Below are positions 28,620 through 56,265 of a DNA stretch of 64,000 nucleotides, piece by piece. The position numbers were made by a program, and so were the translations under genes. The DNA comes from Oculina patagonica (taxonomy: Eukaryota), in contig NC_135768.1 of the NCBI RefSeq assembly GCF_052425735.1, positions 15,872,001 to 15,936,000 on the forward strand, given 5' to 3'. The first letter of the stretch is position 1, and every line of letters starts with the position of its first letter. The notes under the pieces were generated by a model. That model saw only the letters and a list, made by a program, of their open reading frames with translations. It made no database searches and had not been told where the DNA came from.

Positions 28620-29981
28620 TTATTTTGGCCTGAACAGGAATGCTGCAAATTGACCATAGTCAACATCAGTTGAACCACAGTCAATTTCTTGACAATTCAA
28701 AAAAGAAAACTTCACGCCTTGACATTGAACATCACAAAAGCCATCGCACCCCAACCATGATTCAGGACCATCTATTTTAGCTTCAATGCGATACCTGATC
28801 CCTTTGTGTAAAACAACTGGAGAATCAAACATAACATCAAAGCCATAAAAGTGAGAAAACCGCCGTGTCTGCAAACGCTTGGAAGAAAAAGTTCCTGACT
28901 TTGAAACTTTTGCTGTCTTGTAAAATCTGTCTATAGGGCCTCTTATTTCTAAATTTACAACATACCGGTAGTCACTATTTTCGCTACCAAACATTCGTAT
29001 TCCATAAAGCAGTACATCTTTGTCTACCTGCAAATCAATGCAATCTTTCTGATCATTGTCATAATCCCATCCACCAAGATTTGAATCTCCAAATCTGTAA
29101 CACAATAATCCAGTTCCAACCCTTTTCTTTTCCGGAAAACCGACTGGAGAGCTCAGAACTGAATTGAAATACTTCATAATATCAAACACTTCTTCTTGGG
29201 TGAGAATCTTGTAACCAAGAACAACACTGGCAAACTCTTTGCTCTCCATTACTGGAAAACGTATTTCTTTTACAATAACTTCCCCAAGGATCTTTCTTTT
29301 CACGTGGCCATTTGCAGTCAGTCCTTGTCTTTCACATTCCTTTGTAGCCCAGAGATCAACAGCCTTGAACAACTCTACCTCACTGATTGTCAATGAATCT
29401 CTCTTGACAACTGAGTCAAGTAAGGATCTCTCAATTGTCGCGAAACCCTCTGATTTCACAGCTTCTTCGGTTTCTCTGTCAATCAATTCCCAGCATTGAT
29501 CTTCAAGATCTTTCTCATTATATTGCTGAGCATGTGACAGAACACAAAACACGTTACCTGTGTTCACGTTTTTGTGCAGAAACCGAACGCATTCATCAGC
29601 GAGGCAAGGTAATACTATGTATTTCTTTGCCACATACAGCACTTGCATCACATTGTTTTCGTTTAATTCCGCCTTTCCGCTGTACATGTATCGTAGCATT
29701 TCTAACAATCCCTCGTATTCGCAGTCTGGCAAGTCAACAGAGTCTGATTTATCGGCTAGTTCTCCACAAAACATCGCGAGAAACACAGGACTACAGATCG
29801 ACAACACAAACTTGTGAGCAGGAATCGCCATCTTGGTTTGCTTCGCTTTGCGCTCACCTTCGTCACTCGATGCTCTAACAACAAGGCTTACATCGCTTAG
29901 TAGCTCGTTATTAAACATGAAGAGACCTCTTTCCGTGATGCTTGCTTTAGCCTTTTGCCACTTTTCGTCAAAAACAGCCAT
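28620..29981 (-). CDS. BTB-BACK-PHR protein (BTBD1/2/3/6-like), copy 1, intronless, 453 aa
   Basis: FNNELLSDV, IPAHKFVLS..SPVF.AMF (BTB); ELFKAVDLWA..EC, IRFP.M (BACK); YGIRMFG...GQF..FLF (PHR); start MAVFDEKWQ shared by all copies. Confidence 0.93.
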   Translation of the reverse strand: MAVFDEKWQKAKASITERGLFMFNNELLSDVSLVVRASSDEGERKAKQTKMAIPAHKFVLSICSPVFLAMFCGELADKSDSVDLPDCEYEGLLEMLRYMYSGKAELNENNVMQVLYVAKKYIVLPCLADECVRFLHKNVNTGNVFCVLSHAQQYNEKDLEDQCWELIDRETEEAVKSEGFATIERSLLDSVVKRDSLTISEVELFKAVDLWATKECERQGLTANGHVKRKILGEVIVKEIRFPVMESKEFASVVLGYKILTQEEVFDIMKYFNSVLSSPVGFPEKKRVGTGLLCYRFGDSNLGGWDYDNDQKDCIDLQVDKDVLLYGIRMFGSENSDYRYVVNLEIRGPIDRFYKTAKVSKSGTFSSKRLQTRRFSHFYGFDVMFDSPVVLHKGIRYRIEAKIDGPESWLGCDGFCDVQCQGVKFSFLNCQEIDCGSTDVDYGQFAAFLFRPK

Positions 29982-30040
29982 GATTTCTAACAATTTCTAT
30001 GTCGTAGTTTCTCGCAGCAACAGATTCGAACGAACTGCTA

Positions 30041-30097
30041 TCCAATGAGCACTTGCGCGCACCAATGGCGCGGGAAATTTCTGTCACGCAATCCAAA
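30041..30097 (-). promoter_or_regulatory. Conserved upstream module, BTB copy 1
   Basis: ggattgcgtgacagaaatttcccgcgccattggtgcgcgcaagtgctcattgg; present before all six paralogs. Confidence 0.65.
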
Positions 30098-30114
30098 ACA
30101 ATAGGCCGATTTAT

Positions 30115-30450
30115 GTGACAACTTTTATTTGCTTGCGTTCTAGCAATTATGATCTAAGAGGCTATTGTAAGCTTAATCAGTCTACCTTTAAATCAAAGTA
30201 TTTGCATAAATCTTATCGCTACAAAACTTCACGTTCATGGAACAACCTACCTGACAATATAAGAGGAGCGTCCTCTCTTAGAATTTTTAAAAATTTACTG
30301 AACAATGTTAACCTGACCACCGAGGCCAACTGTTGTTGTAATCTTTGTATCGATTAGTTTACATTTTTAAATTTTATTGTCTACATAGTCTTTAAATTTT
30401 ATAGACTAGTTTTTCAGTTTTAAATTTTATAGTCTAATTTTTGTATTTTT
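30115..30450 (+). mobile_element. LINE (CR1/L2-like) 3' fragment
   Basis: NYDLRG...SYRY...SWNNLPDNIR..SSL..FK, typical of the ORF2 C-terminus; AT-rich tail. Confidence 0.7.
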
Positions 30451-30500
30451 TTGAATAGATAACAGGAGCCCATAGATATATTTTTACATTGTAATTTTTA

Positions 30501-31054
30501 GGGCCTGTTTATATGAAGGAGAGTTGTCCCTGGTAGGAGGGTTACCCTCCATACCGAGCCACCCCGGGTGAGAGAGCTTTTAATACGTTTCTTTACAGAT
30601 AGCTGCGAACTGTTTATATGAGAAATTGCAAAGTTGGCTCGGGGGACAGGGTGACCCTGGGTGGCGGGTCACTCGCTTTAAAGGTAGGGTGACCCTGGGG
30701 AGCGAGCCAACTTTTTTTCCATATAAACAGTTTGGTTATTTTTGCCTCGCCTACCAGGGACAAGTTGACACATACGGAGCATGCGCAAATGCTGGAATCG
30801 GCCAAAACAATATCGAAGTCGGCGGTAAATTTGTCCAAAATGGTCTTCGTCGATGCTTCAGCGTTCCTGATTTTAGAAAAGGCCGCCATAATAGATATTT
30901 CAAAATAACTCTCGCCAGTCTTTTGAACCGACAGAGCCAAGTTTTGGCTCGGTCAACAGGGACAACTTTCTCATATAAACGCTCGGTAAAAGATAGCGCG
31001 GGGGAGAGGGTAACCCTCCTACCAGGGACAACTCTCCTCCATATAAACAGGCCC
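30501..31054. mobile_element. PIF/Harbinger MITE (GGGCCTGTTTATATG family), followed by the left end of a second copy (31058-31101)
   Basis: TIR gggcctgtttatatg; TTA/TAA flanks; decayed copies at ~36695-37102, ~45895-46240 and ~50633-51095. Confidence 0.85.
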
Positions 31055-54394: not shown

Positions 54395-54442
54395 TAACCT
54401 GACCCCTCCGCCGCGAGAAAAATAACGCCTGATCGCAGGTTA
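54395..54442. mobile_element. 48-bp micro-MITE with perfect 9-bp TSD
   Basis: TIR taacctg/caggtta; TSD ttctcgagc on both sides; single copy of the target at the paralogous site ~48552. Confidence 0.75.
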
Positions 54443-54485
54443 TTCTCGAGCATGTGTACGCAAAGCGGTTCTTTTTTATAACACT

Positions 54486-54541
54486 TGGATTGCGTGACAA
54501 AATTTTCTCGCGTAATTGGTGCGCGCAAGTGCTCCCTGGGA
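54486..54541 (+). promoter_or_regulatory. Conserved upstream module, BTB copy 6
   Basis: ttggattgcgtgacaaaattttctcgcgtaattggtgcgcgcaagtgctccctggga. Confidence 0.65.
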
Positions 54542-54580
54542 TAGATGTGTTTCGCGTTGAGAACTCGTGTAAGAGCGTAA

Positions 54581-54905
54581 AGGCCCGGTAATACGGGCAA
54601 CATTTTTGTTCAACTTGTCTCGCAACATTGTTGCATTGCAAGTTGAACGAGTTGTTGCCCGTATTACTACCGCGCGCTCAACTTGTCTCGCAACAAATTT
54701 CGATGTTGCAAGTTGCAGCAACATGTTGCACAAAGTAGAACCGAGTTCTACTTTTTGCAACAATTTTTTTCAACTTGCAACACCGAAATTTGTTGCGAGA
54801 CAAGTTGAGCGCGCGGTAGTAATACGGGCAACAACTCGTTCAACTTGCAATGCAACAATGTTGCGAGACAAGTTGAACAAAAATGTTGCCCGTATTACCA
54901 GGTCT
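54581..54905. mobile_element. Palindromic PIF/Harbinger MITE between the upstream module and the ATG of BTB copy 6
   Basis: TIR aggcccggtaatacgggcaac; TAA TSD; whole element is a near-perfect foldback. Confidence 0.88.
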
Positions 54906-54927
54906 TAACAGTGTTTTGAAAGAAATT

Positions 54928-56265
54928 ATGGCTGTTTTTGATGAAAAATGGCAAGAGGTCAGCGCAAGTATCACTAAGAGGGGCATTTTCATGTTTAACA
55001 ACGAGCTACTAAGCGATGTAAGCCTTGTTGTTGCAGCCTCGAGTGACAAAGGTGAACCCAAGAAAAGCAAGATGGCGATTCCTGCTCACAAGTTTGTGTT
55101 GTCGATTTGTAGTCCTGTGTTTTTCGCCATGTTTTGTGGAAAACTGGCCGAGAGATCGGACTCTGTTGACTTACCAGACTGCGAGTACGAGGGAGTGTTA
55201 GAAATGCTACGATACATGTACAGCGGACAGGCGGAATTAAACAAAAACAATGTGATGCAAGTGCTGTATGTGGCAAAGAAATACATCTTACCTTCTCTCG
55301 TCGATGAATGCATTGATTTTTTGGAAGGGAGCGTGAACGCAGAAAACGTGTTTTGTATTCTGTCACATGCTCAGCAATATGATGAGGAAGATCTCGTGGA
55401 TGAATGCTGGAAAGTGATTGACAGAGAAACTGAAAATGTTATGAAATCAGAAGGATTCGCGACAATTGAGCGATCTGTACTGGGAGAAATTGTCAAGAGA
55501 GATTCATTGACAATCCAAGAGGTAGCGTTGTTCAAAGCCGTTGATCTCTGGGCAACAAAAGAGTGTGAAAAACAACGATTGACTCCAGATGGCCATATGA
55601 AAAGAAAAATTCTTGGAGAAGATATTGTAAAAGGAATACGTTTTCCAACAATGGAGGAAAAAGAGTTTGCTAATGTTGTCATTGGTAGCGAGATCCTGAC
55701 TTCAGAAGAACTGGTTGACATAATGAAATATTTCAATTCAGTAAGCTCAGTAGTCAGTTTTCCAGAAAAGGAAAGAGTTGGGGCTCTTTTGTCATGTTGT
55801 AGATTTCGTGGGTTGGCGGATGATACTTGGGGTGAATATGGAGAGTTGAAAAGAAAATCCATTGATCTTAGTGTTGACAAAGATATATTACTCTCGATAT
55901 TACTCCATGGAATAAGAATGCTTGGCAGTGAAAATGGCGAGTATGTTGCAATGTTAAAAATAATTGACAGACAAAGGAACTTTCTCCCATTTATTGCATC
56001 AAGATCAGGAACTTTTTCTTCTGTGTCTATACGTGTGAAGCCAGAATCATTTTATTATCATGGTTTTAATGTTTTGTTTGATTGCCCAGTTAATTTAAAG
56101 AAAGATGGTAAGTATCGTGTTACAGCCATAATAGATGGCCCTTATTCGTCATTTGGGATTGGCTGCTATAAATCTGTTCAAAGTGATGGTGTGACATTTC
56201 GCTTTTCAAGAAATGAGGAAAGTGACGGTGGACAGTTTGCAGAGTTTTTGTTCCAAAAAAAATGA
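54928..56265 (+). CDS. BTB-BACK-PHR protein, copy 6, intronless, 445 aa
   Basis: Domain motifs; ATG at 54928; 12-nt in-frame micro-duplication (DILLSILLHG vs DILLHG in copy 5). Confidence 0.93.
   Translation: MAVFDEKWQEVSASITKRGIFMFNNELLSDVSLVVAASSDKGEPKKSKMAIPAHKFVLSICSPVFFAMFCGKLAERSDSVDLPDCEYEGVLEMLRYMYSGQAELNKNNVMQVLYVAKKYILPSLVDECIDFLEGSVNAENVFCILSHAQQYDEEDLVDECWKVIDRETENVMKSEGFATIERSVLGEIVKRDSLTIQEVALFKAVDLWATKECEKQRLTPDGHMKRKILGEDIVKGIRFPTMEEKEFANVVIGSEILTSEELVDIMKYFNSVSSVVSFPEKERVGALLSCCRFRGLADDTWGEYGELKRKSIDLSVDKDILLSILLHGIRMLGSENGEYVAMLKIIDRQRNFLPFIASRSGTFSSVSIRVKPESFYYHGFNVLFDCPVNLKKDGKYRVTAIIDGPYSSFGIGCYKSVQSDGVTFRFSRNEESDGGQFAEFLFQKK

Follow-up and report, generated by a model that had tools for sequence, protein, structure and literature searches.

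Metazoan genomes encode 4-7 proteins of the BTB-BACK-PHR (BBP) family, which comprises BTBD1, BTBD2, BTBD3 and BTBD6 (Stogios et al. 2005, PMC1257465). In deep-sea vent snails BTBD6 is tandemly expanded, to 56 and 35 copies versus fewer than 5 in relatives (PMC7736800; PMC7895826), an expansion that is read as neural in one paper (PMC7736800) and as immune in the other (PMC7895826). Both provide copy numbers and trees only, with nothing on the evolution of single domains, on gene structure or on promoters. A lineage-specific expansion of MATH-BTB proteins is known from C. elegans (PMC1257465).

The tandem array of the stony coral Oculina patagonica described here is like the BBP family in domain order, in a BTB domain with 41% identity to that of human BTBD6 (2vkp, TM 0.91), in a BTBD2-like PHR fold (3no8, TM 0.86) and in its φ-x-E motif. 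It differs in number (six genes in 28 kb and dozens genome-wide, with 18 or more different O. patagonica proteins among the top 120 homologues, against 4-7 per genome), in that the coral copies are all single-exon, and in having three length-variable PHR loops. As in the vent snails, the same protein family has been multiplied tandemly in a marine invertebrate, but the snails belong to another phylum and their expansion is independent. With the MATH-BTB and F-box families of nematodes and plants the array shares constant cullin-docking and variable substrate-binding modules, tandem arrangement, and birth and death. On the other hand, its variable module is a PHR β-sandwich C-terminal to BTB-BACK rather than MATH or FBA, and its constant module bears signs of exchange and a GC3 shift. 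(Positive selection has a literature in the MATH-BTB and F-box adaptor expansions; in the coral array it is modestly supported.) The PHR domains of MYCBP2, Highwire and RPM-1 have the same β-sandwich fold (3gbw, TM 0.79; 3hwj, TM 0.87), but these are single conserved domains within a giant RING ligase, whereas the coral PHR belongs to a diversified multigene family.

The window, that is the entire 64,000-nucleotide stretch of DNA analysed, contains at 28620-56265 six adjacent uninterrupted ORFs of 440-453 aa, each with BTB, BACK and PHR domains that pass the Pfam gathering scores in all six. By ORF and Pfam, g1 (28620..29981, - strand, 453 aa; BTB 5.9e-23, PHR 5e-22, BACK 1.4e-08), g2 (34734..36083, +, 449 aa), g5 (48731..50053, +, 440 aa) and g6 (54928..56265, +, 445 aa, with an in-frame repeat of 4 aa, ILLS, in its PHR) are single-exon genes, as is g4 (43364..44713, +, 449 aa), for which there is also unspliced RNA. 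The initial annotation had described six essentially intact ORFs and quoted loop peptides that are indeed found in them. Five look intact; the exception is g3 (39117..40454, -, 445 aa, likewise by ORF and Pfam), in which the frame slips by 1 nt within a G6 run (39140-39145), so that other residues stand in place of the last β-strand, GQFAAFLFRPK, conserved in the family. Either this C-terminal frameshift marks a copy in decay or it is a homopolymer artefact. No seventh copy was found in the window by tblastn: the sole extra match is a 38-aa C-terminal coding fragment (36112-36225), stranded as the second copy of a 159-bp tandem duplication (35962..36266, +, 1.9 copies; tandem-repeat search, tblastn and alignment) that lies across the g2 3′ end. 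A near-perfect 333-bp palindrome (54577..54909; 165-nt arms, 94% complementary, 3-nt spacer), in which no tRNA was found, is inserted between the g6 promoter-like motif and the g6 ATG. The other repeats around the array are scattered and decayed, and a TE ORF of at least 110 aa was not found inside 28-57 kb, so that the TE-dense setting first described is borne out in part.

Membership of the BTB-BACK-PHR family is borne out by Pfam, by the fold matches to BTBD2 PHR and BTBD6 BTB and by that of BTB-BACK to the KLHL11-Cul3 complex (4apf, TM 0.71). The φ-x-E Cul3-contact motif aligns, as LAE here and MSE in KLHL3, and the AF2 model of g4 has a pLDDT of 87.8. By homology, the array proteins would be substrate adaptors of Cullin-3 ubiquitin ligases.

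The proposed gradient from constant BTB through intermediate BACK to variable PHR is seen in Nei-Gojobori dN (0.03-0.10, 0.07-0.22 and 0.13-0.48, respectively) and in mean entropy over 90 homologues (0.86, 1.10 and 2.13); M0 ω is 0.26, 0.37 and 0.41. The BTB module, the part that would dock Cul3 and dimerise, is thus kept near constant by purifying selection, and its similarity goes beyond recent duplication, BTB dS reaching 0.2-0.6 while dN stays at 0.03-0.10. Silent sites also differ along the gene: fourfold divergence outside CpG contexts is 0.28 in BTB, 0.39 in BACK and 0.52 in PHR, and GC3 is 0.53, 0.35 and 0.29. In tree tests the BTB data reject the BACK/PHR tree (ΔlnL 168, p-AU ~1e-5) and the BTB tree is rejected by the BACK (ΔlnL 535) and PHR (ΔlnL 796) data; the BACK and PHR phylogenies are mutually compatible with one common subtype tree. 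A scan for breakpoints peaks locally at the BTB/BACK border, although its gains are confounded by unequal rates on the two sides. Mosaic dS is found in the pair L002-L005 (BTB 0.25 vs PHR 1.22) and in g5-g6 (BACK 0.52 vs 0.18 and 0.23). Because of the tree conflict, the low neutral divergence and the high GC3, we infer that paralogs also exchange their 5′ ~400 bp, through gene conversion or unequal recombination, and that this helps to keep the BTB half constant: the drop in synonymous divergence toward the 5′ end and the separate BTB tree point to something beyond constraint. (Both features had been overlooked in the initial annotation.) In a GENECONV-like permutation test no conversion tract between subtypes is significant within the window, where only a g2-g4 3′ tract emerges (P=0.005); the exchange would therefore be old, or else the case for it comes mainly from the sequences of other corals. 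Between O. patagonica and another coral, BTB dS can drop to 0.13, vs 0.37-0.5 for apparently orthologous PHRs, so that within-species conversion is not enough on its own; orthologues missing from the sample, or selection acting on silent sites, may contribute.

In the PHR half, three subtypes had been proposed. Support is good for the pairs 2+4 and 5+6 and poor for 1+3 (bootstrap 61-66), where g1-g3 PHR dN, at 0.44-0.46, is as great as between subtypes. The BACK/PHR subtype tree is older than a species split, and subtypes are kept across species with PHR ω of ~0.3-0.45; BACK and PHR appear to evolve jointly, as older subtypes retained across species. (Such persistence contradicts rapid PHR turnover.) Three loops, HV1-3, vary in length, spanning 14-29, 8-18 and 8-28 aa (residues 294-309, 341-349 and 417-440 of g4), and it is in these segments that the candidate ω>1 (NEB) sites of the PHR fall. 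In ten independent sister pairs ω is 0.72 for the HV segments, 0.40 for the PHR core, 0.34 for BACK and 0.23 for BTB. Positive selection on the PHR, which per-domain codon tests had been expected to reveal, is modestly supported. Using a custom implementation with fixed nucleotide-tree branch lengths on 29 sequences from several corals, with columns of >30% gaps (the most variable parts) left out, 2ΔlnL is 17 for M1a/M2a, 33.8 for M7/M8, 6.1 for M8 vs M8a and 11.7 in a BUSTED-S-like test (ω 3.3 on 8.7% of branch-sites); p is about 0.003-0.01 for the M7/M8, M8a and BUSTED-like tests. There are gene-wide signals of ω>1, but the domain is mostly under purifying to near-neutral evolution: purifying selection acts on 95 of the 151 PHR sites, and a FUBAR-like scan of the PHR yields no convincing positively selected site. 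The β-sandwich core would be constrained, with HV1-3 shifting in length and sequence near the neutral rate, perhaps with episodic positive selection.

The family of single-exon BTBD3/6-like BTB-BACK-PHR genes is large across stony corals. A search with the g5 protein returned 3141 homologues, and most of the O. patagonica proteins counted above are on the same chromosome; the Atlas has 25 clusters, of which the nearest are commonest in Cnidaria. Coral-metagenome loci likewise consist of one ORF. In a related coral, arrays have gene fragments among the copies, which, with the frameshifted g3, agrees with the suggested tandem birth and death. Altogether, it is likely that the locus is a tandem array within a large coral expansion of single-exon BTBD3/6-like adaptors, with a BTB kept by selection and exchange.

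Each gene is preceded by a promoter-like motif of 26-52 nt. It occurs six times in the window, once before each gene and on that gene's strand, where chance would give 0 matches. The matches are at 30039..30090 (-, 58-109 nt upstream of the g1 ATG), 34624..34675 (+, g2, core 34641-34666), 40504..40555 (-, g3), 43268..43319 (+, g4), 48601..48652 (+, g5) and 54491..54542 (+, g6, shifted to about -386..-437 relative to its ATG). In other corals, 5 genes carry the motif upstream as well, and the g6 stretch also matches regions upstream of genes in the related coral. The motif contains TTTCCCGC, which by eye is E2F-like, and two inverted CCAAT boxes (ATTGG), a combination that we take to be typical of proliferation-linked promoters. 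Each copy would then be a self-contained unit with a conserved putative promoter ~60-140 nt before the ATG, apparently TATA-less, followed by one coding exon. Transcription is established for g4 only: RNA-library contigs (runs X1, X2, X6) with 0-1 differences cover its PHR part and extend into the 3′ UTR, and unique intergenic stretches are silent in the RNA runs. In g3, 39197-39590 is covered in X2 only, by one contig of ~95% identity, and no RNA run covers the 3′ end of the PHR (39000-39196).

That the genes are intronless, as first described, is confirmed by uninterrupted ORFs and by g4 contigs colinear with the genome, without joints. Conceivably, though short of probably, the founder arose by retroposition of a BTBD3/6 gene with introns, and this processed copy acquired a promoter before its tandem duplication. 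What speaks for this reading is intronlessness: here as in other corals, every copy is one unbroken ORF, g4 RNA is unspliced, and canonical BTB-BACK-PHR genes number just 4-7 per metazoan genome (PMC1257465). However, intron loss is an alternative, and the duplication units share the promoter, so that the recent spread was DNA-based.

As to function, a role as developmental or germline adaptors, which would have endogenous proteins degraded at particular stages in oocytes and the early embryo and would have multiplied and diverged like many early-embryo gene clusters, is rather doubtful. The E2F-like and CCAAT elements would fit, but their assignment to factors is by eye. Acropora embryos express such genes stage-specifically (adi_v1.12821 and adi_v1.12822, with consecutive ids, have fold changes of 5.4 and 5.9; PMC4824149), comparable with the array at the family level rather than as established orthologues; vertebrate BTBD6 is a Cul3 adaptor in neural differentiation (as cited in PMC7736800). 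The immune-like germline repertoire first proposed, with PHR loops binding viral, transposon or symbiont proteins for Cul3-dependent ubiquitination, is improbable: birth-and-death arrays, variability focused in three indel-rich loops and the gene-wide ω signals suit it, but loop ω in recent pairs is not >1, convincing sites are lacking in the FUBAR-like scan, and subtypes persist between species at low ω. The authors' placing of vent-snail BTBD6 among immunity-related families (PMC7895826) is an annotation category, set against the neural reading (PMC7736800). Plain birth-and-death drift of redundant copies, with BTB most constrained, PHR loops unconstrained and neither exchange nor adaptive diversification, is very improbable, since, for all that ω is <1 in every domain, HV loops are near-neutral, g3 decays and the window holds no significant between-subtype tracts, protein-level constraint alone predicts neither the distinct BTB tree nor the lower fourfold divergence and higher GC3 of BTB, and purifying PHR sites, subtypes kept across species and conserved promoter motifs also oppose it.

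In the preferred reading of a BTB maintained by selection and exchange in an expanded adaptor family, each distinct PHR subtype would recruit a distinct protein to Cul3, and the common BTB may allow heterodimers between paralogs.

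Six long ORFs lie in the window between positions 28620 and 56265; trimmed to the start that all six have in common (MAVFDEKW), they encode products of 440-453 amino acids. Genes g2 (34734-36083), g4 (43364-44713), g5 (48731-50053) and g6 (54928-56265) are read from the forward strand, and g1 (28620-29981) and g3 (39117-40454) from the reverse strand. A tblastn search of the window, which has no N bases, finds no seventh copy; the sole extra match is a 38-residue C-terminal fragment directly 3' of g2. It is contained in a 159-bp tandem duplication spanning the end of g2 (35962-36266), whose second copy corresponds to the last ~40 codons of the gene, stranded beyond its stop. 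The initial annotation's description of six essentially intact ORFs is accurate in the sense that all six are uninterrupted, and fails for g3, whose frame shifts at a run of six G residues (39140-39145) with loss of the last strand of PHR. (Read in the +1 frame, the run leads into GQFAAFLFRPK, the ending conserved across the family, and then a stop.) The shift means either that g3 is a young pseudogene or that the homopolymer was missequenced.

All six proteins pass the Pfam gathering scores for three domains. The N-terminal BTB domain (PF00651) is recognized in each at E values of 1e-23 to 1e-25, and matches structure 2vkp at E 4.6e-21. A BACK domain (PF07707) follows, above the gathering score in each protein, and the C-terminal position is occupied by PHR (PF08005; scores of 41.7-79.5 bits, cut-off 23.6) in place of Kelch repeats. 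The AlphaFold2 model of g4, built from 90 homologues (mean pLDDT 87.8) and compared by Foldseek, places its PHR on that of human BTBD2 (3no8; TM 0.86) and on the MYCBP2 PHR domains (TM 0.79-0.87), its BTB on human BTBD6 (2vkp; TM 0.91, 41% identity) and its BTB-BACK segment on KLHL11 complexed with Cul3 (4apf; TM 0.70-0.71). The phi-x-E motif in the loop between alpha3 and beta4 of BTB, a Cul3-contact motif, reads LAD in g1 and g5 and LAE in the other four proteins; it aligns with MSE of KLHL3 (4hxi) and with LAE of human BTBD6. The g1-g6 proteins would be candidates for Cul3 binding. By their Pfam matches, their fold matches and the phi-x-E alignment, g1-g6 therefore belong, on all features of sequence and fold compared, to the BTB-BACK-PHR family of Stogios et al., who count 4-7 members per metazoan genome and propose PHR as the substrate module (PMC1257465).

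The paralogs align from ~170 nt 5' of the ATG to the stop codon, and scarcely further. The upstream part of this unit is a 52-nt promoter-like motif, TGCGTGACA-AAATTTTCCCGCG-AATTGGCGCGCGCAAGTGCT-CATTGGGAT, whose 26-nt core has six matches in the 64 kb, one 5' of each gene and in the orientation of that gene (none is expected by chance). The motif is also found 79-126 nt 5' of five genes of other corals. In our reading, it would combine an E2F-like element, TTTCCCGC, with two inverted CCAAT boxes.

Contigs of four RNA-type runs (X1, X2, X6 and X8) were placed on the segment 39000-44900, which covers g3 and g4 only. The PHR part and 3' UTR of g4 are covered by contigs with 0-1 differences in X1, X2 and X6, and coverage of its PHR part is incomplete in X8. 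No splice joint in g4 is seen in the contigs of the four runs, and the unique intergenic stretches within the segment are silent. Thus, g4 is transcribed as unspliced RNA. This, together with the six uninterrupted ORFs, upholds the initial annotation's view of the genes as intronless; the retrogene origin that it proposed is one possible source of this, and neither an intron-bearing parent nor poly(A) or target-site-duplication traces were identified in the sequences covered here. RNA coverage of the PHR part of g3 is nil at the 3' end and elsewhere consists of a single contig that is ~95% identical. The very high RNA depth over BTB combines the signal of many paralogs. Between g3 and g4, RNA-library contigs cover 40773-41757 and 42546-42939; they show several differences and have loose ends, and are probably transcribed repeats from other parts of the genome.

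Apart from the six genes and the ORFs antisense to them, the array contains one ORF of at least 110 residues; it is 143 residues long and has no Pfam match. The region is therefore only partly 'TE-dense', as it had been called: decayed repeats common to other loci are present, as is one palindromic insertion. The insertion (54577-54909) is a near-perfect 333-bp palindrome with 165-nt arms that are 94% complementary, a 3-nt spacer and internal sub-repeats. It occupies the g6 leader, separating the promoter motif from the ATG, and looks like a foldback or MITE-type element; no tRNA-like part was found in it. Upstream of the array there is an inverted repeat (24404-24960; 242-nt arms, 93% complementary, 73-nt spacer), and a 220-nt direct repeat, 89% identical, occurs outside the array as two copies 6.6 kb apart (8826-9045 and 15418-15637). 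Neighbouring ORFs, all on the reverse strand, comprise an exon with a MoaC-like domain, which belongs to molybdenum cofactor synthesis (5685-6557), an exon of sulfotransferase family 2 (20102-20809) and a retroelement-associated DUF5641 ORF (63237-63962). Each of the six genes also carries an antisense ORF of 120-170 residues over its BTB region (forward strand: 29435-29878 and 39869-40387; reverse strand: 34709-35119, 43339-43749, 48778-49140 and 54995-55366). Since they are placed in two different frames, these are dropped as genes and are probably by-products of the composition of GC3-rich conserved sequence.

The family to which the array belongs is large. A protein search returns 3141 homologues, the best 120 of which include at least 18 distinct proteins of O. 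patagonica, most of them encoded on the array's own chromosome (24.17 Mb). In the ESM Atlas, 25 clusters have BTB-BACK-PHR architecture at a score of ~0.95 or more, the nearest being commonest in Cnidaria, and the gene is one uninterrupted match in 14 coral-metagenome contigs. Another coral assembly in ENA, ERZ25067872, has similar arrays of 3-4 intact genes per 21 kb, along with PHR-only and BTB-only fragments; between these and the window, intergenic matches are confined to scattered repeats, with no synteny. The ERZ25067872 arrays contain PHR-only ORFs of 280-292 residues, ORFs split into BTB and BACK-PHR parts, and a Pao retrotransposon fragment (these lie at 2788-3666 and 13678-14247 of locus L021 and at 6622-7464 and 13202-14080 of locus L019). 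Partial and split ORFs of this kind are direct signs of gene decay inside arrays. With the six copies, the other O. patagonica proteins and the frameshift of g3, they identify a lineage-specific tandem expansion with birth and death.

Conservation falls from BTB through BACK to PHR, as the initial annotation had it: pairwise dN (Nei-Gojobori) is 0.03-0.10, 0.07-0.22 and 0.13-0.48, respectively. Nei-Gojobori dS also drops toward the 5' end. Across 29 intact coding sequences (the six window genes, 11 genes of ERZ25067872 and 12 carried by metagenome contigs) median dS is 0.55 for BTB, 0.75 for BACK and 1.18 for PHR. Decay of CpG in a methylated gene body is ruled out as the cause of this gradient, because it persists at 4-fold sites outside CpG contexts (divergence 0.28, 0.39 and 0.52, in the same order). 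The composition changes in parallel: in the six window genes GC3 is 0.53, 0.35 and 0.29, and CpG observed/expected is 0.92, 0.49 and 0.60, for BTB, BACK and PHR. The step is sharp, sets the ~420 BTB-coding nucleotides of each gene apart from BACK and PHR within a single exon, and is present in the 29-gene multi-coral set too.

Nucleotide trees (GTR+G), constructed separately for the three domains, indicate that BTB has a history of its own. BACK and PHR agree on one history (AU p 0.20 and 0.075), whose topology the BTB data reject (dlnL 168, p-AU ~1e-5); the BTB topology is rejected in turn by the BACK data (dlnL 535) and the PHR data (dlnL 796). In a scan for a single breakpoint, one local optimum falls at the BTB/BACK border and a second late in BACK, with rate differences also contributing. 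Individual pairs are mosaic: for two coral sequences from outside the window, L002 and L005, dS is 0.25 in BTB vs 1.22 in PHR, with L002 and its sister in the PHR tree, L003, at a BTB dS of 0.44; for g5 and g6, dS is 0.18 in BTB, 0.52 in BACK and 0.23 in PHR. Within the window, a permutation test detects no significant conversion tracts between subtypes (the gene groups of the BACK/PHR tree: 2+4, 5+6 and, weakly, 1+3), and recent long tracts among g1-g6 are limited to one at the 3' ends of g2 and g4. In some pairs BTB dS between species is as low as 0.13, vs 0.37-0.5 for apparently orthologous PHRs; either the true orthologues are unsampled or the silent sites of BTB are not fully neutral. On the basis of the tree conflict, the dS and GC3 gradients, the mosaic pairs and a BTB omega (dN/dS) of 0.26, we read the constancy of BTB as due to purifying selection together with probable exchange of the 5' module among paralogs. 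This exchange is possibly GC-biased.

Codon models were fitted with a codon-likelihood code of our own. Relative branch lengths were fixed, and the columns richest in gaps were excluded. Global omega is 0.41 for PHR and 0.37 for BACK. The PHR tree is, over all sites, 3.3 times as long as the BTB tree, and much of the 'variable half' is thus greater depth or rate. The tests for positive selection, among them the comparison of M7 with M8 that the initial annotation proposed, point both ways. For PHR, M8 is favored over M7 (2dlnL 33.8, P=4.5e-8, 22% of sites at omega 1.33) and over M8a (2dlnL 6.1, P ~0.01), and M2a over M1a (2dlnL 17.0, P 2e-4, 14% of sites at omega 1.9; for BACK P is 0.012, and BTB is not significant). 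A BUSTED-like test that allows synonymous rates to vary assigns omega 3.3 to 8.7% of PHR branch-sites (2dlnL 11.7, P ~0.003), with 2dlnL of 8.2 for BACK and 5.6 for BTB. On the other side, a FUBAR-like grid, also with variable synonymous rates, places 95 of 151 PHR sites under purifying selection and finds no convincing positive site in PHR, the single 'positive' being an E/D column whose synonymous rate is very low.

PHR sites with an M2a posterior of at least 0.8 for omega >1 fall in segments 298-304, 344-346 and 418-420 of g4, that is, in or adjoining three loops, HV1 (residues 294-309), HV2 (341-349) and HV3 (417-440). These segments are the sole length-variable parts of PHR among the 90 homologues (HV1 14-29, HV2 8-18 and HV3 8-28 residues), the core strands being fixed. 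Omega pooled over ten sister pairs, all of them phylogenetically independent, reaches 0.72 in the HV loops (range 0.35-1.10) and so is not above 1; the PHR core (0.40), BACK (0.34) and BTB (0.23) lie lower. In our reading, PHR would be a constrained beta-sandwich bearing three loops that evolve near neutrality; the signal of episodic positive selection appears modest and method-dependent. In the trees, subtypes 2+4 and 5+6 each fall together with genes from the ERZ25067872 coral (99% bootstrap) at a between-species omega of ~0.3-0.45; specificities have therefore been long kept, not churned.

With regard to function, we rate a developmental or germline role as no less likely than an immune one, given the E2F-like/CCAAT reading of the promoter motif and a non-immune lead from Acropora digitifera, the published stage-specific embryonic expression of such genes. 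The immune-like reading is a possibility that the present analysis leaves unsupported. The literature on vent snails points both ways, one paper listing a BTBD6 expansion under immunity-related families (PMC7895826) and a second calling the same expansion neural (PMC7736800). We consider it improbable that, in its full form, the proposal would hold: that stony corals have germline-encoded intracellular recognition by dozens of CRL3 adaptors, whose PHR loops would be directed against foreign (viral, symbiont or transposon) proteins, and in which gene conversion would be restricted to the 5' docking module so that paralogs heterodimerise and dock one Cul3.

The BTB-BACK-PHR family, its proposed role as Cul3 adaptor and the pattern of constant docking and variable recognition are already known, and tandem BTBD6 expansions have been published for snails. 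The searchable literature yielded no description of a coral expansion built of single-exon units that have a promoter in common, of the three length-variable PHR loops, or of the separate history of the BTB segment with its shift in GC3. Restriction of exchange to the 5' end, with the accompanying GC3 shift, would make a tidy example of one module staying uniform while another diverges in a multigene family. As matters stand, this is an expansion of a family of putative substrate adaptors. If the PHR loops set substrate choice, corals would have multiplied an otherwise small and conserved ubiquitin-adaptor scaffold, and a PHR-based example would join those of the MATH-BTB and F-box proteins. 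The symbiosis of O. patagonica is facultative, and the species is a classical model of Vibrio bleaching; the array and its relatives would then constitute a concrete gene set for coral development, symbiosis or disease.
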